Part shown: one piece after another, positions 5,776 through 31,500 of the stretch
How positions within the stretch are numbered: the first letter of the stretch is position 1
Layout of the letters: each line of letters opens with the position of its first letter
Source of the DNA: Kudoa neothunni
Taxonomy: Eukaryota; Animalia; Cnidaria
NCBI GenBank assembly: GCA_964304625.1
Contig: OZ199839.1
Location: 11,314,847-11,378,846, forward strand
DNA: 64,000 bases
Direction of reading: 5' to 3'
Translations under genes and position numbers: made by a program
The notes under the pieces: model-generated
The model's input: the letters and a program-made list of their open reading frames with translations, nothing else
The model's database searches: none
Told to the model about the DNA's origin: nothing

Positions 5776-8700
5776 ATGTTTGCAAGCGAAAGTCAAACCA
5801 TTTTTCAGAATAGCACCAACATTTATATGGCTGTTGAGACGATCGATCCACATAACGACAATCTTGCTTGTGGGAACACGACTTTAATTCAACGAAACGA
5901 ATTACTCATGTTGACCACTTCATTGAACACAGCGGACGAGATGGTAGAGGTCAGAAATCTGATCACCTCCAAACACTGCCACGTTCTCAACGATCATATG
6001 GTCAGTTTCAACAGGAATTCGTGGAATGATGCCAAAATGATGGGTCACCCCTTCTACCGTGAGAACAACCATTTGTTTGGGTTTTTCAAGGCTACCAAAC
6101 CAATTTACTGTTACAACTGTTGTGATTATATATGGGGGAAATTCCACCAAACCGCTATCTGTTATTGTACATATTATCTTTTATTTTGTTAGCTTTGAAT
6201 AATTACTTAAAGTTTGTGGCGTCACCTTCCATCGACACCATTGTATGAATATTTCAGGTATACTTTGCGACAAGAATGAACAACTGAATTGCATAGATTA
6301 TGCAAATGTTATGAAGGTGAATTTTATTATTTTGTATGTGCTCTACAGTTGGTACTTACAGCCTATCGATCAATGGAGCAATAGAGATATTGTGGAGTGG
6401 ATGTTTGCCGCGAAATTCTCCCTCCTTGTAGAGCACATGATCAATGCCGATCTCAACGGGAATTCCTATATACATTATGAAAAAGACGCCTTTTTTGTAA
6501 TTTATATGATGTAAAAGATTGTAAATCAATGAATGGCAAATTTTCTGACAGAAACAGTTTTGTATTGAACCCTCAGAAAGTACTAACAATTTCTACAGTG
6601 CATTGGAATACTTGAATGGAGCCAAGTCTAACAAAAAAGTAAATATTCACTTTAAATTTGGTGATTTGATTGGGGTAGATCTTAGACGGGGTGACCACTG
6701 ATCTAGTTAATAACAATCATACCAAATTAACCAACCACAATGTGTATCCGTACAGTTTTGTTGGTGAGGTCATATGTGAAGCGTGTGAATATCCACTATT
6801 TGGCTACCATGACCAAGGTCTCCTATGTATAGGTAAATCAACTGTTTCAGTATGGTCAGTAATGTAATGACAGAGTGTATGAATTGTTTCCACAACTGGT
6901 GCTATTATGGTTGTTGTTCAATCGAATGCAAATCCAATGTTGATGCAAAAAACAAAGGTGGTTACATTTTATTCTTCCATCCTAGTTGTTTTCAAATATA
7001 ACGGAAATATCACACTTGATAGGCGTCATTATCTCTTCCATTTTGTTGAATAATGTGCCATCAGAACTGGCTGTTGAGTTAATAGAGAATATTCTTGCTA
7101 TTCTATCAACAACCAAATACAAATATAGCTGTTTGCCCCGACACATAACCACATGGGGTAACCCCATGTATGTCGAATTTGTAAGGAAAATATTTGAAGG
7201 TGGTTTTTAATAGTGAAAATTGATGATGTTGTTAACATGTGAGGTAATTTTAGAAGATCATTTGAACACTTCAAAGAATCTCCCCTCGAATAGATTGTCC
7301 ACATTTGTTTGCTTCCTCAATATGCTTTTATTCTTAATAGTAATCTTACCAAGACAACCAGGAACAAAAAGCGATTTCAATTATCTTTATTACGAATCGT
7401 GTGTTGGATCTGTTGGTATTGGCGTCGCCAACAAAATGGATCCAACCAAACTGAATTCAATGTTGTCACAACAGATTGACGATTTGACCGGTGAGCGAAG
7501 GACAATCTTATCTAAAGTGTCGAAACATTTCTTAAAGTGAGTGCGACATGATGTTTGACGATTTACCACAACATTCTTTAGAGTAAACAACGTTATCGGC
7601 ATCCAGCCATTTATATCAATATTTGCTATCCCATTGTTTACACCTCCGGCCAAATATTTCAAGTAATAAAGTTGTTAGTTTTTGATGTAAATTAGAATCT
7701 TGTTATCTTAGATGTTTCAGTTTGATTTATTCGAATTCGGGAGCTCTTCTAGAAGAATTTATCAACAATAGTATTCCATGTTATTACATTTCATTTATGT
7801 GTTTTGTTACAGAGATTATAAATCTTGAGCGTAAAATTGCCACAAACACCCAAATGAAAGAAAATGTCATAGAATATAAACGATGGTATTGGGGTCCAAT
7901 TGACAGGTGATAAGTTTAAGCTATGTTTCCGTCTAATAATACAAAACTGCAGAAACGATGCGATGAAATTATTGTCTCGACAGGTGGATCATAGTTTCAT
8001 CGTGAAAACCAACCGAAAACCGAATAGTTACACCTTATTAGTTCGGTATTTAGAGTTTATGACAATTTCTGAGATATCCATTGATTAGGGTCCATAATAA
8101 AACCAAGTCTATTGAACTTATTCGAAATCTCAAGGGGGGTGGATTCCAATTAAATCTACCTGATCAAAGTACGTTTGAGAATTTAAACGACCTCATCAAC
8201 CATTTCAACACCAATCCTATCAAGTATTCAACACATGAAAGCGTGCCAGAATTGTACTTAAAATATCCAGCTATTTCAAATGTAATAAATTTGTGACGAG
8301 TTACAACTATATATCTATTTAGAACACTGCATCACCTGTAAACAACAGCAATGATAAGTATACTCTAGAAAAACAACTTAAATCACTTACTATCAATTTA
8401 CGTTCGTTAAAAAATGAAGAAGAAACCATTAAGAACGTAATCCAACCACCATTTAACGATAAATTAAATCCAAATCATTTTCGGAATACTAGAATTTGAA
8501 CGAAATGAACATGTCACTGATGTGTGAGGAAAGGTTTTATGAATTTATACAAGATCATGTCAAGTTAAATGAGAATGTCATAAAATCCACAAGCGAATCC
8601 AATCACATTATTCTCAATAATGAGAAAAGCAAACAGGCTCTTTCAAAAAATGAAGTGTACGTTGTTAATCTTAGAGAAAACTCTAAATCCGCTATCAACG

Positions 8701-9356
8701 ATCTTCGAGCTGAAACGACCATTCTGATCGAAAATGAGACTAGAATTAAGAAAAAATGCCAAACAATCATGCATTCTATTGAAAATATTAAAGCGTTATT
8801 GTATAATTTGTCGCACATAATTTTGGAGCTCATAATATAAATTATATATTTAGAGGGGACAATTATAGCCCGCAACACAGCAACGATAATCTCAATTGTG
8901 AATGGTATGGAGGAGATATTAGCAAGTAGATGTGGTGACAGAGTGCTCGCAAATGCTATAATGCGAATTATTTTAGAGAGGAAGTAAAGAAAATTTTTTA
9001 CAATCTACCAGATGGATCTTTCCTTGTGCGTAGTAGTGATCGTGATCTCACACAAAATGTCATTTCTATCAAGTTACTTCTATATATGCAATCATAAACT
9101 TTTAAAAAAGATATCACATGCTTTAGAATGAAGGATAAAGTGATGCATTACAACATCGAATACCAAAATGACCTCTACTGCATCATAGGAAATTCGAGAC
9201 GGTTCGAATCTATTAGCAGCATGATTAATTACTACAAGGAAAATGATATTGATGGTAAATCGTGGGCCCACATGATATTTTTAAATTTTAATAGAGAATT
9301 TCCATTTGAAACTGTTACACCCAGTAGATACACGAAAAAACGATCTTTTATATTGA
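5776..9356 (+). CDS. Class IA PI3K regulatory subunit (p85-like), multi-exon: degenerate SH3, C1, SAM, C1, RhoGAP/BH-like, nSH2, iSH2 coiled coil, cSH2
   Basis: C1a HLFGFFKATKPIYCYNC...FCGVTFHRHHC; SAM-like PIDQWSNRDIVEWM; C1b HNVYPYSFVGEVICEAC...ECMNCFHNWC; nSH2 WYWGPIDR...FIVK...LKYPA; coiled coil at about 8320-8870; cSH2 DGSFLVRSS...LKLLHPV; stop at 9354-9356. The start codon is tentative. Confidence 0.85.
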
Positions 9357-9504
9357 GATACACGTTCTATTATAACCAAATTTTAAGAGTCATGATTTTT
9401 TATATTATATCCCATTTTTCTCATAACAATGTGAACTATTTTTTAAATTTAACTATGGTTTATTTTGATAAAATTGATCTAAATAAATTAGGAACTTGGT
9501 AACT

Positions 9505-9548
9505 TCATATTCATATTCATATTCACATTCACATTCATATTCATATTC
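9505..9548. repeat. (ATTCAT/ATTCAC)n hexamer microsatellite
   Basis: Read directly; about 7 units. Confidence 0.9.
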
Positions 9549-10589
9549 GTAAAGGATTTCCACGCATTTTCCAGAGGATAATGAAAAAATAAATTGCTCA
9601 TCATTGATTTTAAAAACTTAGACATTGATAATAAAGTTTTTAACATTTTTTTTAGAAGCACATTTCCACATGACTAAGGCATGGTTCCAGTTTCGAATGT
9701 AAGTCGAATGACTAATGGATAGTGTTATATCCAAGTCAAATCTATTTTTATTAACTCAAAATATCTATGAACGCATGATATGGGATTTTCAATTAAAATT
9801 AATATCCAAAAAATTAATAGTTTTAGGTCAAGTGAAATTTTAGAAAGTGATACTAATTGACATTCTTATTAATGATAAAATAGAGGTTTCACCAAATACA
9901 ACCGGAACCGGGTACAAAACAATTGAATGTAACGAGTTGTTATTTCATTTATTTTTTCCGATATGGCTTGCAATGTTTGTCTGCCTCGACCAATCAAACA
10001 AAATTTGTTAATGGTGGATTATTGGAAACCTTCAAATACCTCTTCAGTTGGTTATTTTAGTTTTTTTCTTTTAAAATCTTTGATGATAAATCAAAAAACA
10101 TTGAGGGCAATGATTAAGCTCCAAAGGATAATTTCTAAGTTTTAAACAAAATCTTGTTCCATCCCTTTACATGTAATCCCTATCGTTTTGTAGTAAACGC
10201 CAAAAATACTCGATTCTTCGCTTATTTTAACATGAAAATTTAACACGAAAATTTATTATAAATATTAATTATATTTTTTGTATTTTCAAAGTAAATATAA
10301 AATGTTACATCTTCATATATATATTAGGTTTGACGAATTACTAACAAGAAAATTAACTTTCTTGGTTACCAACTATTCTAAAAACCTTTTAGAAGGTAAA
10401 GCGGCATCCGTAATAATATTTCCCAGTTTATACATTTTTTTGGCAGCTTTGTTTTTGTTGAGAAATATTCTACAGATCAAATACTTTCGTAATTGAAATT
10501 TATTACAACTATACTTGTTATAATTTAATATTTTGAGCTAATTTAAGTATTCCGTTACCTTTTTAATGTAGTGAGGATACATTGAAATA

Positions 10590-11305
10590 CAGTAAGAAAC
10601 CAATTTCACGTAATCCCCTCGGGCCCAAAGAAAAAAGTGCGTAAAACCGGTTTGAATAATTACATGCCCACGCGCGCAGTTATTCAGAAAAAATTGGCGT
10701 TCAATAATGATTAAATTGCGTTTATAAAGGTTAATTAACTACATATTAATTTTTAAAAAATAATTAAAACAACGAAACTTTCCACGAATTGCACAATTGC
10801 ACAGCTGCACAGGAAGGTAAACCTTTTTCTTTGGCTAATTGATTCCTCTTGATGATTATCGTGACGACGCTTACTACAACCTTTTTGCTTCGTGTCCACC
10901 CAATCCACTCATATACATCTTCATCAACAGAATTAAATTGTCCTGCATGAAAATAATTTCTATTTTTAGATTCAAAATTTACACGTTTTGATTATTTTAT
11001 TTTTCATCTCTAGGATGCCATTAGGAGTCGAGATAATAGATACTTTAATATGTGATACAATGGCAGTTTTATGGCATTAAATATTGACTTAACTAAATAA
11101 TAAACAAGAAGTACACGGAAAAAGTGCGTGAAATTGGTCAATCACGTGACTTTCACATACGTTATTTAGCAACTTTTTAAAATTATTTTTATAAAAATTT
11201 TGATCGAAATATTATAAGAAACATATTTTATAAAACAACGACCAATCAATATTCTAACTAAATAGGTTTTTAAAATGTGCGTGAAATTGGCTACTTACTT
11301 TACTG
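10590..11305. mobile_element. Tc1/mariner-pogo-type MITE
   Basis: TA|CAGTAAGAAACCAATTTCACG at the left end and CGTGAAATTGGCTACTTACTTTACTG|TA at the right end give imperfect TIRs with TA flanks. The motif GTGCGTGAAATTGG recurs internally. Confidence 0.7.
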
Positions 11306-11323
11306 TACAACCAAACTGTACTA

Positions 11324-12714
11324 TCTATCCTAATATACAAAGCCGTAGTGCCCACGTGTCTGTCTGTCTGTCATTGTGTGTTAACGAATTCATATTCTTA
11401 TAGGAAAACTTTGTTGAACATTTAAAATTATTTTTATACTTTAAAAAATACAAAAATATAACGGGATTGTCTGTTTGCTTATAAAGTGGTGAATTGGTAG
11501 TGTCAACATTGTGCAAACAGATTACAGCTGGCAATAATAAGATTATTCCGTCATGTGACTTTCAATACAATAAAGTTATGGGTGTTGATAACTTAAACTT
11601 TTAGCTGGTATATACAATTGTAATTTTAAATATTATTTTTTCATTCTTTGAATGTAGTAAGGACGATCTACAACATTTGTTTTTGCGAAGGGGGGTGACT
11701 CGGTGTAAACGAAGATTTATTGTTTTAACGAGAGATTAATTATGGTGGAAAAATTGTGTATTATTCACATTTAATTAGCGCAAAAAATGTTCATTATTTT
11801 TATGAAATTTTAAATTAAAGTTATCACGTTTTCTTTAAATGCGATACCATTAAAAAACTTGTAGAATAGGTGGTTCAATGACGGGTTAGTTAATGCGATT
11901 AATACGCCACACGAATTGTAAGAACTTTTGATTTCTGAATGTAGATTTAGTCTACTGCAGGGAGAAATAAACAGATGGGTTATTACTGTTTATTTAGATT
12001 AACGCTATCGATAACAGAGTGATATTGAGGTTTAAATTTTCGTTCAATAATATAATCGACGGGCCTATTGGAAGATAAAGATTATTTTTATTCTTTCTAG
12101 TTTTTCTAAATAAATAATTCACTTTTACGAGAAGCCACTCATGTGGCACCGGTAGAATATTTGTTTTACATAACGAATTATGAATTTATACAGTTTAGAC
12201 GGATGTTACACAATAACTTATGGGTAGTACGTAATATCGCAATAAAACATAAATCAATCTATATCTAGAAAATTTAACTCACAAAATATAAACTTGATAA
12301 TATTAGTAACATATAACTTCAATTTTACTTTCGAAAAATTACATTATCAATGGTTTTTATGCATTTTATGTGTCGTGGGCAATTACGGCTCGTGCGTAAT
12401 GATTTTGATTTTCTCTTTGATTACGCACGACACTTAAGTCATTGTATATAAGGAATAGCAGATTCTTTTAATTTTTCAATGATTTTTTTAAATTTAAATC
12501 AGCCCACTCCCGGACAAAGCCGGGGTTGTCGATAAGACTAAAATTTTTATTTTACTTAACAAGATCTTCAATATGATGATACTATAAAAAAATTAAGAAG
12601 TTATTCTGCTCAGAAAATAGTAATATAAGAGTTTAATATTTTTAAAAATTTTTCTAGACTTATTTTCAATTTGAATTGACCCACTCCCGGGCAAAACCAG
12701 GGTTTTCGCTCTAG
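11324..12714 (+). mobile_element. Non-autonomous Helitron
   Basis: 5' end A|TCTATCCTAATATACAAAG followed by (GTCT)n. 3' end has the hairpin CCCGGGCAAAACCAGGG, then CTAG|T. The A/T insertion site has no TSD. Faint Pif1-like remnants (DGLVN near 11880). Confidence 0.75.
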
Positions 12715-12853
12715 TTTTATCATATATTGTTGAACAATGAGTTATTGCCTTTGTGTGATGCTGGATTTTAAATAATACGATTACTGCTCAATAGAAAGCT
12801 AATCTTGAAAAAACCGAGGTAATTGAAAAACAAGTTTAATCCACAACACAACA

Positions 12854-15800
12854 ATGTCTACAAGTGTTAGGAAAAACTTCTGGCAATCCAGAACTAATGA
12901 TGGATTTGTGATTGTTTACTTTCTCATGCCGAACGGCCAAGTTATAGTGTTGGAGTGTAACGAATTGTTGACGTTGTTCGAAATCAAAATTGCTGCATTC
13001 AACGAAGCTAAAAATTATCCACTCTACAGTTTGCTGAGAGAACCGAAATTCTATAATTTCTCTTATGTCACCAACCACGGCACAATACAGGTAATCAACG
13101 AAAGTGAAGAGTCAGTTCGAAAGTTAGTCAATCTAAGAAATTTGCACAAGGCTGTATTTAAATTTGTGGAAGCTGAATTCAACGACGTAGAAAAGTATAT
13201 TCAATCACAAATATCGTCCATTATTGGAGGTGAAGTTATGTCGAGAATATCAGCATTGTCTGGTGGGGAGGAACATCGTTTCATCGCAAAATATAAGGAA
13301 ATTGTACAGAAAATGGTAATGAACCGAGATTCGAAGGTGTGGGATGAGAGACTTGCTATGGCATACCCACCAGATATAGATTTTGGTCCTGATGTGCCCA
13401 AATACGTTCAATACCAGTTACTTAATGCTTATTATAATGATGAATCCATTTAAATATACATAGATTGATTGAAGAGAAAGAGTTTAAAGTGAAATTGATG
13501 CTCGATCAAAACCATTCTACAGCCCTACTTCTCAACATCGATGACACTCCATCTACGGTGCTTCCAAAGGTGATGGGTATATTCAAAAAGAAATGCAATA
13601 TTAGCGAAGACCTCGAAGAAGTCATTTTGAAGGTGGTTGGACAGAATAGTTATTTATGCAAGGAGTACGATCCTATCAGTCATCAACTGATAGAATACCC
13701 AATTATTAGATACAAGGTAGTTGTTTAAATTTTACAATTGATATTTTAATCACTGTTACAAAGTATATACGAGAATCGATTAGAAAATACCAAACACCTC
13801 GAATAACCATTTTCAAAAAAAGCAATATCAAACTGGACTGCACTCAGCTGATTCGCCAGAAAGAACCACCGCCCGTTCCACAAAAGAACACAAAAATTGA
13901 ATCAACTCACTTATGGGATATCAAAGAAGATGAGTTTTACATCAAAATAAACAATGTTACCAATATCAATACATTGGATAAATATGTAAGAGATATATAG
14001 TGGAGAGGAATTTTAAAGTTAAAATTAATGGTGTTTAGTACGGAATAGCAGGAGCAGTATTCGTGGGTAAGGAACCCGTATCCAAAATTATCCACACTGA
14101 ATTGAAACAAGGACCTCGACTTTTTTTTAAGGAAAAAATGCATTTTGGGTTGCCAACATATGTTTATCCACGTATGGCTAAAATTTGTCTATGTTTATAT
14201 TCTACCTCTAAGCCATCAAACAAGGTATTAATAGTTTATGTTTTTTACTGCTACTACTACAAAAATAACAACTATTGTAGATTAAAAACGCCGAATCTAT
14301 TGCATGGTTAAATATAGCAATGTTTGATTTTCAGGGAAATCTAAACTTTGTCAACATTCCCACTGATAGCCAAAATTTTGATAACGACTTCAATGAATTC
14401 ACATTCTCAATGTTCAACTACGAAGAAATAACCAGTGGTGTAATTCATAAACCTATGGGACCAATCTCGTTGCCTATTCAAAATAATGATAAAATAAAAA
14501 TTAATATTTCCTACATAAATTATTCAAAAACTATAAAGGGTCCTTCGAGAGATGATGTGAGTTTGATTACTATGATCTTCATATCTGTTAAATTATTTTC
14601 TCCAATATATGTATATACATCAATTGTTCACTCATATACACGTTTAGTACAATACTCTGCTGAAAAACACTAAAACTAAAGATAAAAATTATTTACAGGT
14701 TAATGACTGTTAAACTGTTATATTATGAAATAAAAATATAGTTAAATTTGGGAACCGTTGTTTCTAAATATTTAGTTGACAGTGACGTAATTTTGTTTTT
14801 AGATATTTTTTAAATTTATTTATAGTCAAAATTGGATGTATGCATATGCTCAGAGAACACTAATAATCTTTATAAAATATTAGACTGCAGCGAAACGCAC
14901 ATTGAAAGCTATCAGCAAACTACATGTGTACAACTCGATAAGAAACATTCATAGCATATTTCTGTGGTCCAACTGGTAGTATAATAGTGACTGTTACAAG
15001 TATTATTTTAGTTTATTAGGAAATTAATTAGGGATCAGTATCCGCAGTTTTTGATTTTGCTCCTAAGGTCTATTGATTGGATCAACAGAGAACATATTGC
15101 TATTGTAATTTACTCCATCGATTCCCAATCAATTTACGAGCAATCTTACTTACGCTAGGTGTATGAACTGCTCGAAAATTGGCCCCTAATGAGTCCTTCT
15201 AATGCACTTGAATTACTTGGTTATTGGTATTCAGACGAATATGTAAGAGCTTATGCGGTTTCTTGTGTAAACCAGATGAGGTAAAATAATTAGTCTACCT
15301 GTATTAGTCTTTCTCCTCTCGTAAATTTTATTGAATTTAATTAAGCCTTTCACAATCGGAGGCGGTACAAATGTCATCACATAATACCTTGATTCCTTCG
15401 AGAGTTTGCTTATTTTTCTTAGAAGACTTTAAAAAATACGGAATATTTTTAAGCTTTAAATTAATTTCCACTTTGGACGGATTAATCTCAACATTCGTAT
15501 ATAATATATATCGAGATTTTTCCAAATTTATTACAAGCTTAATATTTCTATGTATTTTTAATTAGTTATTATGATAATATCATGAAATTCTCAAATAGTT
15601 ATTTAATAATAGCAGTAAATTGTATAAAATAGAGTTGCACAAATTAAGACCACCAAGCCTTACCAAGTCTTTTATATTAGCTATTTATTGGTCCGCAACA
15701 AATTTTAAATACATAAGCATTATTTTTTTAGTTTATTCATTTACACTTTTTTAAATTATCAAGGTATTAACCAAAATTTTTTAGGTTTTTTATCCTTAGG

Positions 15801-18800
15801 AGTTTTTAAAGAGCTAACAATGAATCTCAGTTTAAAAAGTGTTCGTATAATTGGTATAAAAAAGATTTATCCATTCATGAATACACAATATATTTCCGTT
15901 CTTCTAAATAAAACAAAATTATTGAATATTTAAAGTAAATGATGCTGATTAAAAACTTAATATGAAAAGTAATAGAATTATTGGTATTTATACAATTCTT
16001 ATAGATTTAATTACCATGAGTTTTTAACTTTTTAATATTCAATGTAAATATATGGATAATTTAATTAGTTATCTACATTAGATTTTTAATAGCATTATTA
16101 TTGGATTTTAAATTATTTACAATTTTATATAAATTTCTTATAAAATTTAAATAAAAAAAGAAATAACAAAAAAATTCTCGTTGGAATTTTTAAACAAAAA
16201 TACACTGAAATCTGGATATTCGCCCGGTTAACATGTTGTGTCGATTTATTTACATAATAAAATTAATTCTTCTGCATTTAATTTAAGTTTTTATTTGATT
16301 AAAACAACAAAATGGCATAAATAGTGTATTATTTCAAGTTAAAAACGCATTCGTTTTAATTTTGAAAGGAAATGTGTTTATGGACGACGAATTAACTTTT
16401 GAATTTTCATGAGTAATCTAATATAATAATTAAATAGCTAATTAATGAAATTAAATTACATGACTATTATCTCAATCAGTGGTGCACAAACTTTTGGAGC
16501 CTCGGGCCAAATTTTACTTTTCGAAAACTTCCAGGGCCAGAAAATTTTAAAACCAAGTTATAGCTCACACTTTGTATAGGTTAATTAATTCCAAAACGCA
16601 ATATTCACAATAATTCAAGAATAATAAGTTTATTAAATGTTCTAAATTGAATAATTATTGACATAGCGAACTAATGATAGACATTCGCGTGGATTTTGCT
16701 ATTGGCCCGAACACGTTAATTAGGCCATTAATTTAGTTTTAGTTAACTCAAAAAACATTAAAATTGTATTATTAAACTATATATCATGAATGGAATTATT
16801 TTTAAATGGGTATCAAATCTATAAGATTCATTTTTGTTGTATATATCAGAAAAGACATGGAATTATTTATTATTAATAGGAACTAGATGCACACACAAAA
16901 ATAAAGTGCAATATATCTTGATGATGTATTTTTTAAAAGCTCATTTTTATTTCCAGTAAATTGGCATAAAATATTCTAGAGTATAACTATTGATATTTCA
17001 TGAATATCGTACTTTAGAATTTCACCTGATCTTCGAGATATGGAGGGGGATATTACAAACCAAAAATTATAAGAAATATTGAATTATTTTCGATTTGTAT
17101 TACATTAGCAGTGGAAATTGTTTATCATAATTTTACTTATATTATTTTGAGTAACTTGAGAAAACTTTACAACAATAATTAGCATAGCGGTCATGTACCG
17201 TTTAAAAGAAGAAAATCGAATGAGACTGTAGATAAGTTTACATTTTTTCTTAATACTCTAAATTTTCGTTATTTTTAAAGCAATCGATTGTTCGAGAGCT
17301 AAATGGTTTTCTGTATTTTATGCTCTGACATTTTGTATCGTTCACGATGCCAATACTTATGTGTTGGATTAACGCTAATGCTTTGGCATTTAAAATGACT
17401 CCATTCAACACAAAATGTCATAACCAATTACTGAATCATCATTTGACAAATCTTTTTTACAGATATTGCCCTTGTATCCAACAGTTGTATTTTGCTTTGA
17501 AGATTGCTTAAGATTGAATGGAGCATCTTTGCTAACATAAGTGGGTATCTTATTTAATGGAATTTTCGATTAATAACCGTAACAGCGAGATCTTTACTAA
17601 TAAACCAAATAAGAATGTCTGAAAAGAACTATATTATTCCAGTTTATAATAGAGTTATTCGAATTTTTGTTTCTCTATTATATTAAAAACCGATTTGTTG
17701 TAATAAGGTGATTTTTGTTTAATTACAGTTGAAAGAACTAATTCTGAAACAAATATAAACCAATAAATATCTTATATGAAACCTGAAATCTTATTATTTA
17801 TAAATATGTCACCTTTCAACTTCTGAAATATTGTTATTCTCAACATTCTCCTAACTTGTACTAGTGTCCATTACGCAAATATTATCAGGTTAAAATTACC
17901 CACGCGCCTTTGAATATTATGAACTTAAAATGTGTTTATAAATTGAATATTTAAAAATAAATATTAAAAATTAAACGCAAATGTTACAAATAATAGTTTA
18001 ATAATAGTTATTCGTGTGACAAGATTACTTTCATATAATCACGTAATTTCAAACATAATTGACACCATCATATCCTCAAAATTTAAAAAAATACTTATAT
18101 CGTATTTATAATGGTATTTATTGTTACTTAAATTGAAATAAAACTAAAGGAATGGTCTAATTAGCATGTTCGGGCAAATAGACACTTCGCAAATAATATT
18201 CGTCCCCTGTTGAACAAAACAATATTTTTCTGTCCAGACGTCATTAAATTTTATAGTTTCACCATCAACTTTACTTTATTTAATTTCAGTCATTTAGCTT
18301 AATGATAGAATAAAAATAACATTAATTAAAGATGGGATCTACTTTGGGTGAGCGAAATGGTTGTGTGCGAATATGTGGGGTGCCGTCTAAATTGTCCTGC
18401 CAAATATACTCTATCAGTTCTAATAGATTTTTTTCCTTTGTGTCAGTTTTTTTACGTTTTATTTATTTTTCTTATAGAAGGTTTACGAAAAATTTCATTT
18501 TTACGTACAATATAAATATATTATTATTTCACATCGTTCATAAGACATACTTTAATTGTTTGTCTTAATTTAACTGAACTTGAACTTCGGATCAGCATGT
18601 TTGAGGAATTTATTAATTATAAATCCGCCCAGCACCTGTATAATTTTCTTCCCCTCTTTACACGCTCAAGGAGAAATACGTAAAATTGACACATAAACTT
18701 CTATTAACAAATATTTTCTATATAAAATAGTGAAATGGTTAATAGAAAAAAAATGTTTTGCATATTTAGAGATTTTATTGATGATGTGTTCTTAAGGGTT

Positions 18801-19572
18801 CGCGTATAATAAAAACCTCAATAAATTTTTTTAATAGATTCATTAGATGCTCCCGATATATTCAATAACTAGATAAACCAATTGAAGTTAAATGGTCGAA
18901 TGTTTTTTTTGTTTCAATTAAAAGTATACCATCAATCTGAACTTAGTTAGGGTTCAACGCGGACCACAAAAAAGCTCATTGTGGGCCGGAGTTTGTGCAC
19001 CACTGATCTAAGTAATATAATCATACACTTTTTTCTCCAACGTCATTAATAAATTAATTTATAAAGATATATTATTTTTATTAAAATCTTCGTTTTTCTA
19101 TGATTATAATATAAAAACAACATCAAAAACTTTAAAGCATATCACATCGTAACGTTGATTTTTAGTAACGTGGAATTGGAATGTTATTTGTTACAACTAA
19201 TTCAGGTTTCTTTGAAGTAAAAAAATCAAATTGTTCGATCCATAATAGGCCCTAAAATTTGAGCTATATCTCGACTGTTCGTTGGCAAATTTCCTTATTA
19301 CACGAGCTGTTCACAATCGACGAATTACTCATTTCATCTTTTGGAATTTAAAGTATAAAATTTCTTCTTAATTTTGGTCAAAATTCAAAAATTAGATCCG
19401 AAATGGGAGCTCCTAAATTTTCGGTACGATTTGGACTGTTGTTGGAAATTATTTGTCGTGGAGATTTCGGATATTGCCAAGTCCTGTTTCGTCAAGTAAT
19501 TACGACACAATCCATGAATTAATTATAGCATGATCTGATATTTTATTAAAAAAACTCTACATCACTTACATC

Positions 19573-19604
<32 letters not shown>

Positions 19605-21053
19605 TATCTATATTAATGTATAATTCATAAAGGTAGAATTCCTTGAAAGACTTGAATTCCTCTCTTCTAATATTCAAAGAGCTGGCAATCTTGATCGACA
19701 TGTAAATTCATTTTGAACTATTCCACGAATTTTTCACCTCAAAGTAGACTAGAAAATGTCTTTTTATTGAATTTGTCACCATGGCTACTAACATAGATGT
19801 TTTTCAGGACGTGGTCAATCCATTGGAACCTCGATACCACATGAGTTCGCTCAAGTAGATAGTTTATTTGGGAAGCAGCATCGTCGAAATTTCCTATTTA
19901 CAATTATTAACATTATTTGTAGAATAGAAGAATGTGACATTAAGGAATCGAAAAAGAAGCCCATATTTTTGGTATTTAAGAATATGGATCCGTTAGGGAG
20001 GGATATCAAAATATTGTTCAAATATGGAGACGGTAAAGTTTTTGACATATCTTGTTGAAGCTAATTATAAATAAACGCATAAAAAATCCAAATCTATAGA
20101 TTTACGTCAGGACATACTTACTCTACAAACTATACGAGTGATGGATCATATATGGCAAAAATCTGGTTATGATTTAAAGTAGTCGAATATCTGAGGTGAG
20201 AATTGAATGTGTATTAAACTTGGTGAATTAAGGTTAGTACCCTACAAAGTGTTAGCAAGTGGGACCAACACAGGCCTAATAGAAATAGTGGATAGCTCTT
20301 GTACATTGGGGAAGATTCAACTTAAAAAAGGTTTCAAGAAAAACACCATTTATGATTGGATAATTGAATCGAAACCGGTCAAAATGCCTGCGGAAGCAGC
20401 TCTCGAAATGTTCAAATTATCCTGCACGGCCTATTCCATCGTTACACTAGTGTTGGGTATAGGAGACCGACACAATGACAACATAATGCTGAAGCAAAAT
20501 GGCACATTATTTCACATCGATTTTGGTCATTTCTTAGGGAACTACAAGAGTTTTATGGGTATACGACGAGAAAGAGTTCCCTTTTTGTTGACTACTGATT
20601 TCTTGTTTGCAGCCACAGTTGGTTCGGACGAAGTGTCGTCTACCAAGTTCAAGGGGTTATTCGTTGTTTAACTTAATCGGTTCGATGTGAGTGAATAATA
20701 ATTCATAATGACGAAATAGGTTTCAGAAACTTTGCGAAGATGTGTACATGGCGATCAGAAAATACGGCAATCACATAGTGACATTGTTTGCTCTGATGAT
20801 CAACAGCAATCTGCCTGAATTGAACAAGCCTGACGATTTGAATTTTCTGATGAACACATTATCTTTGGGCAAAGCAAAAAAGGAATCGATCTCCTTCTTT
20901 CGTGAGAAATTCAAAGAAGCCTACAACGGAAGATGGAGCACTTATCTGAATTTTTACGCCCATAACAAACGTATTGCAAGCACTCAAACTACCTCAAACA
21001 AGATATCTGATAAAATGATGGCCGACCTCAAAAACGATATTCTAGATATATGA
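12854..21053 (+). CDS. Class IA PI3K catalytic subunit p110 (PIK3CA/B/D-like), multi-exon, with a 3.9-kb intron (15281-19165)
   Basis: Adaptor-binding domain [13 protein letters not shown]...[11 protein letters not shown], then RBD and C2 ([12 protein letters not shown]). Helical domain LKAIS...FLWS and YLLQLIQ. Intact kinase motifs [20 protein letters not shown] and HIDFGHFLG. Confidence 0.95.
16477..19005 (-). mobile_element. hAT (Buster/Charlie-type) transposon with decayed transposase, inside the p110 intron
   Basis: Perfect 16-bp TIRs CAGTGGTGCACAAACT / AGTTTGTGCACCACTG. Degenerate 8-bp TSD ATCTCAAT / ATCTAAGT (6/8). Minus-strand remnant LDGTPH..HT near 18370. Confidence 0.85.
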
Positions 21054-21279
21054 TCGCTTCTGACGTAAACATTAAAAATGAATGAATATCCACATACAAG
21101 TTGGAATAGTTAAATTTTACTAAATTTCTTTGAATAATGTTTTTAACGCTGTCTTGTCTACATTGATGGTGTCAACGCAGCATTAATCATTAATGGCGCC
21201 GTAAAACATAACGCGATATTTCAATCCACAAATTAAAAAAAATAACAATCATTAACAATGAGAAAAATATATAGGAAAT

Positions 21280-21748
21280 TTAGGCGGAAAGAGTAGCCAA
21301 AAAACTGTCAACTTTATCAGCATTCTGTTTCAACGACTCAGTACGAAAAACCATTTCAGCAGTGGAATCTTTCAGTTTCGACATCGATGTAAGCACATTG
21401 TAAAATAGGTTTTTAAGGGAGTTTTTCATCAACTCCATACAATATTTATTCCAATTGATGAATGCTTCTGGGAGATTCCCTAAATTAGATTAAAACACGT
21501 TGATATTTAATCTAGATTTTCTAAATTATTGGATCTTTCGTTTACATGCTTTCGAATCTTTGGGGCTCTCATTAAAATCTTCATCTAATGGATAGTAAAA
21601 AAGAACTAAAAATAATAATCACGTGCACTAATGGCTGCCTCTCCTATTATATCGACTGCGACGTCGTCTAGAAGGCTTTTACTCCTATAATAAGTGGCAC
21701 TGAGACTATTTTTCCATTAATGACTATATACGTTCGATGCTCATCCAT
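21280..21748 (-). CDS. Four-exon 105-aa helical protein, tentatively BLOC-1 subunit 3-like
   Basis: Exons 21748-21732, 21684-21623, 21584-21546 and 21479-21280 are joined by GT-AG introns of 47, 38 and 66 nt with all phases compatible. Product: MDEHRTSKSLLDDVAVDIIGEAAISAHEDFNESPKDSKAWNLPEAFINWNKYCMELMKNSLKNLFYNVLTSMSKLKDSTAEMVFRTESLKQNADKVDSFLATLSA*. The family assignment is weak. Confidence 0.7.
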
Positions 21749-22480
21749 AGCTGCTTAAAATTAAATACAAAACTCGCGCATCACATCTAACTCTTGATAG
21801 ATACGTTAAAAAAAAGAACACATTCCGAATTTATGAATAAAATAATCAGAGCACTTCCATTAGAAAAAGTTTTAATTTCGAGTGGAGGATTTTTTTAATT
21901 TTTATAATTTGATAATTAATGCAAATCCCAATAGTTAGTCGGCTTATCGTCCACATTATAATATCAAAGCTCCGATTTATTTATAAAAGCAGTTTATCTC
22001 TACCAATATTAATCTGTGTAAAGCAATGATTATTTATAATTTAATAATTGTATATTTTTATGTTACTATTTTTATTGTGTGCTCATTGGGGTTTTTATCA
22101 TGGCGTTAAAATTTTTGTAGTTTTAGAATCGATATGGTAATTTATAGAGTTATACGCTCTAATTCCTGTAAAAATAAACAATAATTAGTTGAATATGTTA
22201 AAATATTCGTAATTTATTTTTTATCGACTTTAAAAAATTTATTACACTTTTTTAATCCTGATACGAACAATATCGTTAAACATGATTATTTAATAATATT
22301 TAATTCCTTTCATTCTTCTTGTGTGATTTAATTTATTTTTTACTTAAATCAAGATAAGTTAACTCTTGATATTCCATAACTTGTTGGGGCCAGGGAAATT
22401 TACACAATACCTGTACGTGTGCACACAATAAAAATAATTATTTATTTGAAAATATTTGTTAATTTTGTGAGGTTTCCTCA

Positions 22481-23024
22481 TTCTTTGATTCTTTGCTTAT
22501 TTGATTCTTTGCTTATTTGATTCTTTGCTTATTTGATTATTTGCTTATTTGATTATTTGCTTATTTGATTATTTGCTTATTTGATTATTTGCTTATTTGA
22601 TTATTTGCTTATTTGATTATTTGCTTATTTGATTATTTGATTATTTGCTTATTTGATTATTTGCTTATTTGATTATTTGCTTATTTGATTATTTGCTTAT
22701 TTGATTATTTGCTTATTTGATTATTTGCTTATTTGATTATTTGCTTATTTGATTATTTGCTTATTTGATTATTTGCTTATTTGATTATTTGCTTATTTGA
22801 TTATTTGCTTATTTGATTATTTGCTTATTTGATTATTTGCTTATTTGATTATTTGATTATTTGCTTATTTGATTATTTGCTTATTTGCTTATTTGCTTAT
22901 TTGATTCTTTGCTTATTTGATTCTTTGCTTATTTGATTATTTGATTATTTGATTCTTTGCTTATTTGATTCTTTGCTTATTTGATTATTTGATTCTTTGC
23001 TTATTTGATTATTTGCTTATTTGA
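22481..23024. repeat. 8-mer tandem array (TTATTTGA/TTATTTGC/TTCTTTGC) with 16-mer higher-order period
   Basis: Read directly; 544 bp, about 68 octamers. Confidence 0.97.
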
Positions 23025-23536
23025 TGTAATGAGTAACTATGAGGATTATAACAGAACTTACATATGTGCAATCAACATCAGAACAATATGGCATCACCAC
23101 CGTTAAGCTATAACTCGAGGGTTTGAACCTTATCCGCAATTATTCATTACATTATAGTGCTTGTGTATTTTAATTTTATGTTCAATATTTCTCTGAAAAG
23201 GAGTCATTTGCGGCATTTATTTTAAAGCATTTTGAAGATTAAAATGAACAAATAGTGTTGAGCAGTAATGGGAGCATCAATTTTCTCATCTTATATAAAA
23301 TGTAAATATCAAAAAAAAGGTTTCCAATTTCATATATTATTATTTCCTATCTTATCGAAATACAGTTATCCAAAAATAGGCTAAATTATAACGAATTACG
23401 CAGCATCGATAATTTACTGTAATTGTTCCATGAGTTGGATAAATTTTACGTTTTATTCCAATTTTTAATAAATTTACTAATAAAATTTTTATTTTTAACT
23501 AGAATTTATTTCAACCTATTAAGATTGTATATTTAA

Positions 23537-25111
23537 CCCTCCGAGCAGCTCCTAACTGATTATATACATCTGACGTCTTTCGGTTTGAAAAAGACCCCAA
23601 GACCAAATTCCGTATAATTAACCAATCTCATTCCCATTCATATTTTAAACAATTACATGATATTTTAAATATTAATTAAATTTCATTTTATATTAAAATA
23701 TACAAAATTATATATCGCAAGATTAATTGTAATTGTTCGAATGCATATTTTGACTCAATCTTGGCCGTGTAAATCGTTATTAAGTTTGTTGAATGCAATA
23801 TTCCAAGTAAAAATGCTATATAAAACGTAATAAATTTATATTGATCGAAGTTTTAATAAAAATTAGTTTTTTCACCTTTTAAGTGATATAAGGACTTTCT
23901 ATCCTCAGAAATATATTTAGTTATCACTCTATTTGAGTATTTATAAAATATAAAATTTATATATTTTTTTTGATGAAATTTTTTGGTAGTTATTCTTTAT
24001 ATTTAGACACATCATCTACCGTTAGGCGATTCATTTTTTAATAGTTTAAAGCTTTGATTAAATATTGTTAAAGAAAACCAAAATTAAAAACAGAAAATAA
24101 TGAATCAATGGATTCTACTATCTAATATCTAGTGTTGTTGTCACATCGTGGACAAACTTTAATAAATGTGCTATAGGGCACATTATTTTAACCTTAATCT
24201 CCTTTCATCGCTTGCATCAAAATCGTCTAAGTAGAGGTGGAGGGAGCGTTTGATTTTTGTATATTCCTTCAGTGGCATAACTTATCTAAAAATCTCAACA
24301 GCCCGTATCTAACATCCAGAATCTTTCGAGAAATTCTGTTTTCGTTTTAAAAATTGACATGTATTTCTGTATGCTGAGATATGCACGACAACCATTCAAA
24401 TCGACATCACCATAAGAAAAATCATAATGATAACAGCCAAATTTATTGACCATCGGATAATTGTAGATAACAATTGATCAGTGAAGAATAAGTTAAAACA
24501 ATCTTTAACGTTTTATATTGTTGAGGATTGTAGGTAGTTACACAAGGATTTGGATTTAAAATGTTTTTACTTCGTATCGGTTTTTCTAGGAGGAATCTTG
24601 CCCCGTATGTTATTATCTTAGTGAGTGAGAAGGTATATTAATATAGTTCCAACATTGTTAGAATCGGATGGAAATAATTGCTTTTAAATTAATTCATCAA
24701 TTGCAATTATGATGGAAGAATCTTCAGTGTAACCATTTTAGCTAGACAACAATTCACAACTCAAAGTTGCTACATGATCGTCCATGTTTGCAAAGGCATA
24801 TTAGCGGTTTTATGCCATTACTTTTATTTAAAAATAACTAAATCTAAAATGAGGTTCTAAAAAATAAATTATTCCACAGTTTGTATGAAAAAAAATTTGG
24901 GGTATTTTTTGACCCCAAAAGCACCAGGTGAAATATTTGAGAAACAACCTATTCCTTTCTGTTTAAAGAAAGGTTAACATTGTCTTTCAAAACAATTGAT
25001 TATTGTAAAAGAATAGGTAGGATATATAGATAAATGAAGTAAGATATGAGGGAGAAAATAACTGATTAAACCACGATTGGAGTCGAAAACGACCCCAAGA
25101 TGCTCGGAGGG
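23537..25111 (-). mobile_element. piggyBac-family element with decayed transposase
   Basis: TTAA TSDs at 23533-36 and 25112-15 flank a perfect 11-bp TIR, CCCTCCGAGCA / TGCTCGGAGGG. Subterminal GACCCCAA repeats are present, with minus-strand IAIDE and TGQD remnants. Confidence 0.9.
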
Positions 25112-26146
25112 TTAAACATGAATCTTGATAACATTAGTTCTTAAAGTGTGAAGCGAATATTTGTTGATAAGTTGTAATTATTTTTTTGGCATTTCCCTGT
25201 CATTATTAATTTATAAATTGCGTTAGTTCACCATTGTTATATTTTATGGAGTGTCTTTTTTAATATGTAGGTGGCAAGAAATTTTTAATTGATTATGCTG
25301 CGAGATAATAGAAATAAGAAGTTTTATGTAATAGAGTCGATGTAACGCATGAGTATTATGTATAATTACATTATTTTTTGTGACATTGAATTTCGAGGGT
25401 ATCATTTCGTAACAGACAACAAATAAATGTGTCTAATTGCAATCCATTTGCACATGTGCGTAATTGATTAATCAATTTTTGTAAGATGTTTCCCTCTTAT
25501 TCATACTTATATATATATATATATACATATGTATATATATGTGGGAAATTTATAATTAAATAATAGAATTAATTTTTTTTTTTGGAAATAAAGAAATGGC
25601 TGAAATTATTATATTTTTTATTGTATTTTACCAACAAAATGACACAGTAAGTCATTATGAACGAAAAGTTCATCCAAAATGTAGAATATTGAAAATTTCT
25701 CTATATTCATAACTCATTTTCAGTTGTATTTTCACTTAACTAAGGTAATATACCTAATTTTAGTATTACAAATTTTTCAGTTAACATCCTGTTATAATAA
25801 AGGAGATTATTGAGCGTTATTTGATCAATCGTTTTCTAAATTAGACTTTAAGAGTGATTTTAAATTAGAAAAGTACAAATAACTAATAAAAGAATTCTTA
25901 TTAGGGCTTAAACATGTAAGTAAGGACTAGGAACAAATTTTATTTTTACAAATTGTTTTTTTAAACAAACTAAGCCTAATTATTTTGAAACCAGCCGTAA
26001 TTTATATCGTTGGATTATAGGGTTTTCCGAGCTTTAACAACACTGTGTCAAGCATTAGCAACATTGTGTCAAGCTTTAACAACACGTGTCTAAATTTGGA
26101 ATCTAATTAAGTAGAGAATTCATATTTATAATTCAGAAAATATCAA

Positions 26147-27243
26147 ATGAGTGGTAATTATGTATAACATAGTTGATTTGTATAATATTTATGAAATAAA
26201 TAAGATACCAGTAACGATTCTCAAATTACAGCCCCCAAAAAAACGAGACGGACAATCTCAAATGTCACAAGGTCAATGATTATTAACCAATGTGAAAAAA
26301 AATATAGCAACTCTATAATTGCAGAAAACGTCGGTGTACATCGATGCACCGTTGCTTCAATTGTAAAAGCCTACCTAGTTGACGGAAAGGTAGAATCTTT
26401 AAAGCGGGGTGGCGATTATTCCACAAAGCTAACTGATGAACAAAAGTTGTTTATTAGAAATTGGGTGGACGAAGACGCAACAATTACTCTCAAAGCCCTT
26501 CGCCTGAAATTAATTGACGAATGTGGAGTAAGCGTAAGTGCAAGCACTATTAACAGATGCTTGAAACAATTCCACTATTCGTTAAAAATAGTTACAATTG
26601 TCCCCGAGCGAAGGAATTGTGAGAATACTTTAGAACAGCGCCTGGTGTATGCTCAAAACTTTAACTCAAAAATTCTTGAGATTGAAGATAAAAATTTTAT
26701 TTTTATCGATGAAGTTGGGTTCAGCGTATCTACGCGAACTAGAAAAGGTCGTTCCCTTGCTGGTACATCAGCTTACGTTCCTGTTGGAGGCGTTAGAACA
26801 AGGAACATATCCGTTATAGCCTCAATGAGTAAATACGGTATGGTATTTTATAAAGTTAATCGGCGACCAGTGAATGGAGAGGATTTTAAGGAATATCTTA
26901 TTGAGCTAGTAGATTTTTGTCACTCGATCGAAATAGATAATCCATGCTTCATATTGGACAACGCGAGAATTCATCATTATCGTGGACTTACAGATGTGCT
27001 GAACTCTATGCAATTGATATTGATGTACCTGCCTCCATATTCGCCATTTTTGAACCCGATCGAAATGTGTTCAGTAAATGGAAGAACCATGTTATACGGG
27101 GCTCAGCAAGGGATGAACCTGATCTTTTAAACCTAATAGATGATGGGTTTAAAATTATCACTCCTGACGATTGTTCCGGATACTATCGAAAGATGCTTCG
27201 ATATGTTTCCAGATGTCTCAACAGAGAAATTATTATGGAATAA
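26147..27243 (+). CDS. DD34E transposase (HTH + DDE_3), 51-nt intron at 26154-26204, 1-nt frameshift near 27064
   Basis: Motifs IFIDE, ILDNARIH and LPPYSPFLNPIE, with 34 residues between the second D and the E. Adding one A at GAAATG restores PIENVFSKWK into ORF 26944-27243. The ATG at 26147 splices in frame (MSDTSNDSQITAPKKTRR). Confidence 0.9.
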
Positions 27244-27501
27244 ATATAAATTTTATCATCTTTAAGAAGATTATATATTATATCCTCCCAATTTGACATT
27301 ATTATTTTATACGCGCATCAAAACTGCGGAATTTGTAATTAATCTTGAGTTACATCTAGTGCTGTGTTAATTTAGTAAAGTTTATTTCATTTAAGCTTAA
27401 TCACGTTTATCGTTGTGTATAAAAATTTTGTTTTTAATCTCGACTTGTTAAAAAAGTTCAAATTATTTCTTTTATTAGTTAATGCAGCAAACCCTGGAAT
27501 C

Positions 27502-27851
27502 GTGTTGTTAAAGCTTGACACAATGTTGTTAAAGCTTGACACAATGTTGTTAAAGCTTGACACAATGTTGTTAAAGCTTGACACAATGTTGTTAAAGCTT
27601 GACACAATGTTGTTAAAGCTTGACACAATGTTGTTAAAGCTTGACACAATGTTGTTAAAGCTTGACACAATGTTGCTAATGCTTGACACAATGTTGTTAA
27701 TGCTTGACACAATGTTGCTAATGCTTGACACAATGTTGCTAATGCTTGACACAATGTTGCTAATGCTTGACACAATGTTGCTAATGCTTGACACAATGTT
27801 GCTAATGCTTGACACAATGTTGCTAATGCTTGACACAATGTTGTTAAAGCT
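27502..27851. repeat. 21-bp minisatellite (16 full units plus a partial one) forming the expanded right TIR of the Tc1/IS630 element
   Basis: Unit GCTTGACACAATGTTG(T/C)TAA(A/T). Inverted copies of the unit occur at 26031-26085 in the left TIR. Confidence 0.97.
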
Positions 27852-28531
27852 CGGAAAACCCTATAATTTTCAACTTCGATAGCTTGTTAGTTTATTTAAC
27901 AACTTTTATTGTTTCTAAAGACATCCCATTACAAAGGGTTACGAGAAAGCCGGAGTTAACTGAAGTTCTCCATTATGTATTCAAAAACTGACTTCATAAG
28001 CTGTGTGGGATCGAACTAAATCTCATTATACCTAGAGGATTAAAATAAACATTACATTCTTCTGAACGTAATCAACGAATTAGGGGCCAATTTAAACCAA
28101 GAGTCTGTGTCATTTTTACGTTCCTAAAAGGATTGCAAATGAGAGATTTGCTACTGTATATAATAGATGTAGATGCAGGTCGATAACGCTAATCTCTCAT
28201 AAAATTGAGATTATCATATCAAATTGGAAATTTTGAGTAATTGATGCAATTTTCATCTGTCCAATAGTTTTGAGATTAATAATTATTAGCAACTTGCTTT
28301 TTTGAACCCACATACACATAGAAACGCGGCAAAACACAGATGCATATGATCTGTTTTGAACAGTATAATGAAATCAATTTTATTGGAAAATTTAGGTATA
28401 GTTTCTAATTTATTTGAATAAAAATGAAAAAATGTTGAACTTAAAATATCATTAAGAAAATCTAATTATTTTTCCTACATCTTCACGTCTGGTTTTGTTA
28501 CACATGCGCCCCAATCGAATACGAAGACTGA

Positions 28532-31500
28532 ATGGATTGCAAACTAAAAAATATTTCGGAAGAAGTGGAAGACGAATGGGATCATATTTCTGAGAAACTT
28601 GAAAACGTCCGAGAAATCGACCGGAAACTTTCTAAGCTTTACAGTTATCAAGTATAAATTGAAGCTGTGTTATACCATATTAATTCATTAATAGTGTAGG
28701 AATGATAACTCTGAAGTATCTTCTGATCTCTATGAATCCAGTAGAAGAAATTTGGAGTCTTTTGCAAATTGTTTTATTAACCGAAAAGTATCCGATTAGC
28801 AGAGATTTTTGTTTCCACTCGAATTATAGAAAAACAGAGAATTATACAATAAAAGAACTGCCACATTTATGGACAAATATTCTGAATTTCGGGATTCTAG
28901 AGTTTTTCTCAAAGTAAATGATTAAACAATATTTTTTCGTCGGTTGTGCAAGCAGGTGATTATTGGCGCTTAAAATTATAATCCATCGTGCCCAATTTAA
29001 GCTCAAAGGATTAATTTAAGAGGTGGCTGTTATATTGACACAGTAAATAATATTCAGATGACACTAGTTTTGACTATGTTTAATTATTTCTGGTTCACCA
29101 CTTCGCTCTCAAGATATTTAAATAATTATATACAATAGATTCTACAAAATCAAATTTGTATATAACTTGTACGAAAGATTTGACGAACTTAAAATCTGTT
29201 ATCTCGCAGGCGTACGTGCCGTTTGGGATAAAAATTTACCTTGCAAATAGCCTCTGTCTATTACAAAATCACACTTGGAGTAATAAACAATATTTGAGGT
29301 TTCTCGTCTACAAAAAATAGTATTTATTAAAAAATAAGATATTTTTAATTATTTAGTTGTTATATATATATATCAATGCGCCTCCCAAATCGATTTTAAA
29401 ATCCGTTTTCGGCTTTTTAACCCCGCAATTCTCAATATTATTGTACCAAAGATTCTTAACTCGAACTGAGCCTAATCGATTCTAAAATATGAGCGTCGAA
29501 ATATTAACTTTATCATTTCGATGAATTATAAAGCATATGAGGAATTTTTACATTAAATGTATTTACCAGTAAATATTTAAATCGTAATGTTTTTCTTTTC
29601 GTTTGTAAAAATCATTAATTCTACCTTTAAAAATAAAAGTTTCTTATTAAATATTCTTTTAAAAATTTGTGTGCTTGAATTTTTTAACGGGTTAATATCA
29701 CCATTTTCGAAGCGAATAAGAGAATTTAAGCGTTTACTGTCAGCTGATGCCTAATTCAGTGAAAACCCAGGTTTATTGTTACCTTCCTGTAAGAATACAC
29801 TAAATATTGACTTTCTAAGTAATAACCTTTAGTATTAGTTGATAATCATTATTTTTGTTTTATAATATATTTAAAATGATATATTGTAATTTATCGAATG
29901 AAATAATAATCTTTTGAATTATTTGGGCATATTTAATAATTTTTTATTATATTAATCAATAATATAATAATAGAGAAAAAATAGAAATATTATATAATCA
30001 GTGTTATTGAATATTGTTTTAATTTTTAAAATAATTTGTCCATTAAATAGTTAATTTTAAAATAATAAATCGACTTTTAGTATCTCTTACATTCTATAAT
30101 GGAAATGGCCAGTATATTTTTTCCAAGAAGAAATTTTCTCCAGTGGCTAATTAATAGCGCTAATAATCACTTTCTTCTTAATATTTGTTTTAATTAATAA
30201 AAAAGGGCCTAACCACTCAAAACCTTCAAAATGATTTCTCCCAATATTATGTCGACACTGGTAAACGACCTCATAATTATATACGCGACACCTCCGTGGA
30301 ATCACGCTACAATTCCTATCCAAAATTGAAAGAGCTTATTCGATTAAAGGTTTCTAAATTGATTCACTATTGTGCATTCTTTCATTTTTAACTATTATTG
30401 TGAATGCCATTGTTTAGGATGAAATAATCGATAAAAGGCGAATTCCCCCATTGTATATACGATACCTGTTTCATATGTGAACAAATTTGTTTAGTCATTT
30501 AAATGAAGACTTGCGTAAATTTGATTTGACGAAATTATGCAACCAATTTGATGTGATTTTAATCCAACCGCCTTTGAATGAATACAAACAACAACATCCA
30601 ATTGTACATCAGAATCTGGATACATGGACATGGGATGAGGTGGTTTGTAGTTTTGATTTTTTTAACTTAATCGTTTGCAGATCAAAGAGTTGAATATTGG
30701 CGCAATAGCATCGCCAAAGTCCTTTTTATTTATGTGGTGTGGCTCCAAAGAAGGATTGGAAAAAGGAAGAGAAGTAACGCTTATGGATTGGTCAATTTTA
30801 TCGATATAATTTTTGCTGTCACCACACAGTGCTTTAGAAAATGGGGTTTTCGAAGATGTGAAGATATCTGTTGGTTGAAAACTGACAAAAAATCTAAATC
30901 CAACCTTCCAATTGTTGTTGAAGGAAACCTACTTCAAAATCAAAAAGAACATCTGCTTATGGGGATCAAAGGAACCGTCCGTAGAAACATGGATGTGCAT
31001 CTCATTCACACGAATATTGATCTTGACGTTATTGTGAATGATGAGGTTATATCTTGGTCAAATATTTAATATGCGTTATTATTATTGTTTAATAATGTGT
31101 AGCAACCTAATGGAAGTTTGGAAAAACCGAGCGAAATCTATCGACTTATTGAACACTTTTGTCTTAGTAGAAAAAGATTATGTTTGTTTGGCGATCGAAA
31201 TTCTTTAAGAGAGGGTGAGTTATAACTTCGAGTTAATAGTTAGTTAATAACTAATACCTCATTGTGTATGATGTTGACTAGATTTTCGTAGGTTGGGTTG
31301 TTGTTGGAAAGGACTTAGATTGCTTCAACTACACGCCGGAACATTATAATTCCTACTTTGAAAATGATGGTGTGCTAATTGGTTCAACCCCTGAAATCGA
31401 ACAACTACGACCCAAATCCCCTGTGCAAAAACGCGTCCCCCAAATTCAGCTACAAAATAATACCACAAATTCTAATCCTTTGATGTTTTTCCGGGGTTAA
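28532..31500 (+). CDS. METTL14: m6A methyltransferase non-catalytic subunit METTL14, multi-exon, 1.3-kb intron (28914-30205)
   Basis: Motifs FRDSRVFLK|GLTTQNLQNDFSQYYVDTGKRPHNYIRD, YPKLKELIRLK, FDVILIQPPL, KWGFRRCEDICWLKT, KEHLLMGIKGTVRR, IEHFCLSRKRL and EIEQLRPKSP. Stop at 31498-31500. The 5' exons are tentative. Confidence 0.95.

Follow-up and report, generated by a model that had tools for sequence, protein, structure and literature searches.

Why do the genes for the two subunits of a class IA PI3K stand side by side in the genome of Kudoa neothunni, a parasite of fish muscle, and does their proximity serve a function? The window analysed here, a stretch of 64,000 nucleotides (contig C2:11314847-11378846), carries a p85-like regulatory-subunit gene followed on the same strand by a gene for the p110 catalytic subunit, a tandem arrangement that differs from human, Drosophila and C. 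elegans, in which p85 and p110 genes are unlinked. The first-pass annotation took the pair for a functional two-gene signalling module, possibly co-regulated, co-duplicated as a unit or processed from a shared transcript. The products of the two genes very probably work together as the sole class IA PI3K of this animal, while the genes themselves are probably ordinary, separately transcribed tandem genes whose adjacency is neutral and specific to the lineage.

Genome and comparison sequences

The K. neothunni assembly (Weber, Paulini and Blaxter 2025, PMC12239612) spans 40.2 Mb with an N50 of 12.0 Mb, derives from low-coverage reads of an infected host, and has 5,316 predicted proteins, a median intron length of 49 bp and a repeat content of 46%; mapped RNA reads were too few for transcript-based annotation. 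The genome searched here comprises 40,260,978 bases in 4 contigs. Pfam, PDB, fold and complex runs were done exon by exon, and the short exons limit the sensitivity of Pfam. With the first p110 exon as query, a word search yielded a single protein at 59% identity, encoded on a Logan contig of 16.8 kb from run SRR31175926 (L001; 20.8% GC), which represents a different species and an independent short-read assembly.

The catalytic gene

The p110 gene and its main parts are as follows.

12854-21053, + strand: class IA PI3K catalytic subunit (p110) gene, from exon matches to Pfam, alignment with L001 and the DRH and DFG motifs
12854-13228, + strand: exon part of the adaptor-binding domain (ABD), from the PI3K_p85B match and 73% identity to L001
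15282-19160, + strand: large p110 intron of 3.9 kb, with nested dispersed repeats at 16467-19030; about 35 nt in the L001 orthologue (9287 to 9324)
19894-21053, + strand: p110 kinase domain exons, from the PI3_PI4_kinase match and 74-87% identity to L001

Above-threshold Pfam matches were obtained for the ABD (PI3K_p85B, PF02192) at 12854-13450 (E 2.2e-10, 40.5 bits against a cut-off of 27), for PI3K_rbd at 13465-13725 (E 9.3e-06) and for the helical or PIK domain (PI3Ka) at 15159-15281 (E 2.6e-09). PI3_PI4_kinase matched at 20207-20668 with E 1.4e-31, and PI3K_C2 matched weakly at 14063-14308 (E 0.042, 14.3 bits). The RBD, C2 and helical regions are all collinear with L001, with which p110 aligns over about 989 amino acids at 65% identity (L001:7062-10964). 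The catalytic motifs are intact (GIGDRHNDN with DRH, HIDFGH with DFG), and the gene agrees with the L001 orthologue at both ends, starting with the ATG at 12854 and closing with a stop codon whose last base is 21053, which upholds the forward-strand start first proposed at 12854. Judged from its sequence, p110 is complete, with ABD, RBD, C2, helical and kinase domains, and apparently active. The same domain series characterizes p110 in the known class IA systems, namely PIK3CA/CB/CD with PIK3R1-3 in human, Pi3K92E with Pi3K21B in Drosophila and age-1 with aap-1 in C. elegans.

Across the whole genome, Pfam returned 11 PI3/PI4-kinase matches at about 8 loci, and a single ABD locus, that at 12854. 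The p110 gene at 12854-21053 is therefore the sole class IA catalytic gene of K. neothunni.

The p85-like gene

The upstream gene consists of many short exons, whose bounds were drawn from stop-to-stop segments, GT/AG sites and comparison with L001.

5776-9356, + strand: p85-like regulatory-subunit gene, start tentative, from collinear coding conservation with L001:1368-4507
5890-7390, + strand: N-terminal half, conserved coding blocks with a C1-type Cys/His motif, tblastx identity to L001 36-60%
7806-8281, + strand: N-terminal SH2, 3 exons at about 7806-7907, 7948-8052 and 8087-8281, from a weak Pfam SH2 match and motifs shared with L001
8323-8800, + strand: inter-SH2 helical region, 2 exons at 8323-8436 and 8493-8800, GT/AG introns and phases agreeing with L001
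8879-9356, + strand: C-terminal SH2, 4 exons at about 8879-8926, 8975-9073, 9125-9254 and 9293-9356, from a Pfam SH2 match above cut-off

The alignment with L001 covers about 514 amino acids at 46% identity. An in-frame ATG at 5776 serves as the tentative start; conservation with L001 sets in about 110 nt further downstream, with a first block from 5890 onward. At the other end, the TGA at 9354-9356 follows a short intron (9255-9292), and the last exon aligns with L001 to a common stop, so the end at 9356 given by the first-pass annotation stands.

This gene very probably encodes a p85-type regulatory subunit, as indicated by a layout of SH2, about 140 helical residues and a second SH2. Like p85 of class IA PI3K, the Kudoa candidate would have a pair of SH2 domains on either side of a long, predicted helical hairpin. 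The N-terminal SH2 runs in the order WYWGPIDR, FIVK and LKYP, of which WYWGPIDR and LKYP are conserved in L001. The C-terminal SH2 runs WYGGDISK/REEV, an intact FLVR and LLHPV, followed by the stop; its Pfam SH2 score is 36.4 bits once the intron is bridged, and its middle exon is 94% identical to L001. Between them, AlphaFold2 models the second inter-SH2 exon as a helix (2-34), a turn and a further helix (44-101) at a mean pLDDT of 79.9. In the PDB, Foldseek found nothing that matches this hairpin model, and an ESM Atlas feature search with the exon gave no meaningful neighbour (top score 0.82, a bacterial TelA cluster).

Compared with known p85 proteins, the Kudoa gene differs in its N-terminal part. 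A C1-type motif was read by eye at 6709-6828 and 6876-6905 (H-x12-C-x2-C-x13-C, then C-x2-C-x4-H-x2-C), and the N-terminal SH2 is degenerate. Exon-level Pfam gave no match at all in the N-terminal exons of either species, whether to SH3, SAM or BH (RhoGAP-like) domains. SH3 and BH domains are optional in the p85 family, being confined to long isoforms and absent from p55, p50 and fly p60. In the degenerate SH2 (7948-8052), a Lys replaces the phosphotyrosine-binding Arg, giving FIVK for FLVR. Because L001 carries FVVK at the same place (L001:3221-3325), the replacement is a conserved change and not a sequencing error.

About 6 SH2 loci were found in the genome, and none besides this one has the layout of SH2, helical region and SH2. 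Two of the remaining loci are SH3-SH2-tyrosine-kinase genes; the rest comprise a Vav-like CH/RhoGEF/SH2 gene, a small gene with a single SH2 and an open reading frame (ORF) of 1,466 residues. The inter-SH2 exon is also single-copy, and no other K. neothunni gene could supply a p85-type partner for the ABD. In the Vav-like gene (L008, C1:3490500-3498500), a second SH2-like stretch lies about 540 nt past the first (L008:4701-4847) and is not recognised by Pfam.

Genome-wide, both p85-like and p110 are single-copy. The earlier proposal that the pair was co-duplicated as a unit finds no basis in a genome with one ABD locus and one iSH2-like locus.

Predicted pairing of the subunits

Most likely the two products pair as the usual heterodimer, with the ABD contacting the helical stretch between the SH2 domains. 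A complex prediction with the ABD and the two inter-SH2 exons gave a median score of 0.51 (runs 0.51, 0.85 and 0.00), classed as 'weak support', and because a like complex has already been solved, this modelled score is to be read as likeness and not as proven binding. The best of 3 controls scored 0.01; the runs agreed in at least 0% of contacts, and partner pLDDT was at least 53. In calibration, 51 of 78 solved complexes attained the mark set for the score, as did 2 of 108 mismatched pairs, and scores of 0.60 or below included only 5 of the 78 solved complexes together with all 4 mismatches that passed.

Conserved order in a relative

By tblastx, the L001 contig and the window are collinear over an RF-1-like gene (on the - strand), the p85-like gene and p110 at full length, and an MT-A70-like gene. 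The sequence comparison thus places the tandem p85-like/p110 order before the split of K. neothunni and the L001 species. In published work, two Kudoa genomes were described as 'remarkably colinear', their orthologue positions having a rank correlation of 0.88 (PMC12239612). Set against this genome-wide microsynteny, the pair lies within a collinear block of at least 4 genes common to a divergent relative, and nothing sets it apart from the surrounding block.

The spacer between the genes

9357-12853, no strand: intergenic spacer of 3,497 bp with about 2 kb of dispersed repeats, from ORF, tRNA, Rfam and repeat scans

No ORF in the spacer exceeds 72 codons, and scans for tRNAs and Rfam families found none, in agreement with the first-pass annotation, which placed no gene between p85-like and p110. 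Its repeats lie, with approximate bounds, at 10575-11313, 11408-12198 and 12204-12716. The first of them, with at least 40 copies and 23-nt terminal inverted repeats, resembles a miniature inverted-repeat transposable element (MITE), a type named in the first-pass annotation. A GC-rich hairpin occurs in duplicate (12470-12531 and 12647-12708), and AATAAA signals follow the p85-like stop from 9482 onward. A scan for bacterial promoters and terminators gave no more than shuffled sequence does and has no relevance for a eukaryote. Intergenic distances have a published median of 3,578 bp in K. neothunni and one of 2,363 bp in K. sp. trachurus (PMC12239612), against which the spacers measure 3,497 bp here and 2,548 bp in L001.

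The L001 spacer holds an ORF of 112 codons (5915-6400) with an SH2-like motif (TFYHHISETKAENILK..GTFLVCP; Pfam SH2 E 0.073) and slightly raised GC, preceded by a stretch that resembles the C-terminal helix of a PH domain. This ORF may represent an additional small adaptor gene, or else a gene in decay, and the pair may accordingly not be strictly adjacent in L001. Nothing corresponding to the ORF was found in K. neothunni, either in the spacer or in the rest of the genome, and the content of the spacer is therefore not conserved.

More distant p110 loci

Two cnidarians that are more distant lack the adjacency. The p110 gene of Thelohanellus kitauei (GCA_000827895.1), which starts at L004:6513, has a pannexin-like gene 4.6 kb upstream and a DUF2340 gene downstream, and the 4.6 kb upstream of p110 contain no ORF or SH2 motif. 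In the hydrozoan assembly GCA_029227915.2, which we take to be Hydractinia symbiolongicarpus, the 10 kb around p110 on either side are free of SH2 genes. The microsynteny comparison that had been suggested as a check on the locus therefore divides: adjacency is kept in L001, and it is missing from T. kitauei and, within 10 kb, from the hydrozoan.

Three further eukaryote p110 loci (L002; L003; L011/L012) have no p85-like neighbour, and L002 and L011/L012 have no neighbour with an SH2 at all. At L003:2167-7698, from an intron-poor eukaryote in an ENA metagenome, a single-SH2 ORF that appears tensin-like by eye lies 1.2 kb downstream of p110; as a candidate p85 it was rejected, having one SH2 and no p85-like character. 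At L002:8270-10810, two tandem ORFs both match the PI3K ABD model and may represent a local duplication of the 5' end of p110.

Weighing the readings

The reading favoured here, that a p85 gene and a p110 gene are neutral neighbours, has several findings on the opposite side of the balance. For the p85 gene, the N-terminal SH2 remains below threshold at exon level (Pfam E 0.12, 12.9 bits), the Pfam iSH2 model PF16454 has no match at the locus, and PDB sequence searches with the SH2 and inter-SH2 exons returned either generic SH2 proteins (SHP2, PLC-gamma and Lck, with p85 among the weak matches) or nothing, so that the putative p85 assignment rests on architecture. For neutrality, one close relative, L001, was compared for adjacency, and a HMMER search with an ABD-exon profile found no other; furthermore, one named pair among about 5,300 genes would adjoin with a chance of only about 4 in 10,000, which gives selection for the linkage some probability.

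The first alternative is that the upstream gene encodes a different adaptor with tandem SH2 domains, such as a chimaerin-like C1/GAP protein to which they are fused; its position beside p110 would then have no bearing on PI3K. The lack of a p85-specific sequence match, a C1-type motif absent from canonical p85 and the complex prediction, graded 'weak support' with a run of 0.00 among three, would agree with such a protein. Against it stand the layout of SH2, about 140 helical residues and SH2 at the extreme C-terminus, which is that of p85 and occurs at no other K. neothunni locus; the ABD, whose 73% identity to L001 implies an existing partner; and complex-prediction controls of at most 0.01. 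This alternative is improbable, and the identification of the gene as p85-type is retained.

The second alternative accepts both subunits and holds that their linkage is kept by selection, through a shared chromatin context or regulatory elements that would balance the amounts of the subunits. In class IA PI3K, p110 on its own is unstable, and p85 in excess acts as an inhibitor. L001 keeps the adjacency, strand and order although its p85-like protein is only 46% identical, both genes are single-copy, and the a-priori chance for one named pair is low. These points are met by a repeat-filled spacer of median length, by the equal conservation of the flanking genes, by the possible extra ORF between the L001 genes and by the missing adjacency in T. 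kitauei and the hydrozoan assembly. As a rough estimate, moreover, a few thousand interacting pairs among about 5,300 genes would yield about one adjacent pair by chance, and this pair was noticed post hoc. Selected linkage is accordingly judged unlikely.

The third alternative, one polycistronic precursor resolved by spliced-leader trans-splicing, is very remote. Operons of this type in nematodes and tunicates likewise place genes in tandem on the same strand, sometimes for cooperating proteins; the strand and order are here the same in two species, and spliced-leader trans-splicing exists in hydrozoan cnidarians. The intercistronic spacers of known operons, however, are repeat-free and measure roughly 100-400 bp, as opposed to 3.5 kb in K. 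neothunni and 2.5 kb in L001. The Kudoa spacer thus differs from the operon pattern in length, which equals the genome median, and in its largely transposon-derived content, and the AATAAA signals from 9482 onward also oppose a shared transcript, as does the searched literature, in which no report of nuclear trans-splicing in myxozoans was found. Finally, a misjoin between 9356 and 12854, for which the low-coverage reads of an infected host (PMC12239612) could be cited, is excluded for practical purposes, because the same order recurs over 16.8 kb in another species, assembled independently from short reads, which also means that the adjacency is conserved.

Neutral adjacency is therefore the reading that is kept as probable. 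The pair would have arisen by rearrangement on the lineage that led to Kudoa, and would persist through slow turnover of gene order and not through a functional need for linkage, with the two genes presumably transcribed independently. Because gene order is collinear across Kudoa genomes (0.88), any adjacent pair is expected to stay adjacent, and because the flanking genes are conserved as well and the spacers are of median length, the conservation of this pair is no sign of function. Of the two-gene signalling module proposed in the first-pass annotation, the partnership of the subunits (very probable) and their true proximity remain, whereas a function of the linkage itself does not follow from a median spacer in collinear genomes.

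Neighbouring features of the window

The MT-A70-like methyltransferase gene at 28827-31425, recognised by eye from DPPL and EHLLMGIKG, is 60-73% identical to L001:12265-13465. Between p110 and this gene (21054-28826) lie a Tc1/mariner-type transposase ORF at 26276-27130 (DDE_3, E 3.2e-23) and a tandem repeat at about 27387-27882; the corresponding L001 interval measures only 1.3 kb.

Meaning for Kudoa biology

No earlier report of adjacent p85 and p110 genes was found in the searched literature. There is a slim chance that, in the reduced genome of Kudoa, selection holds the only p85 gene beside the only p110 gene so that their mutually dependent products are expressed in step; if true, animals would here offer a rare example of a signalling heterodimer whose genes are maintained as a pair. 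The adjacency opens no new mechanistic question unless expression data reveal co-regulation. What the locus does document is the retention, in a highly reduced cnidarian parasite, of one complete class IA PI3K together with a single plausible regulatory partner. Annotation can profit from this, and so can ideas on receptor-tyrosine-kinase signalling in myxozoans.

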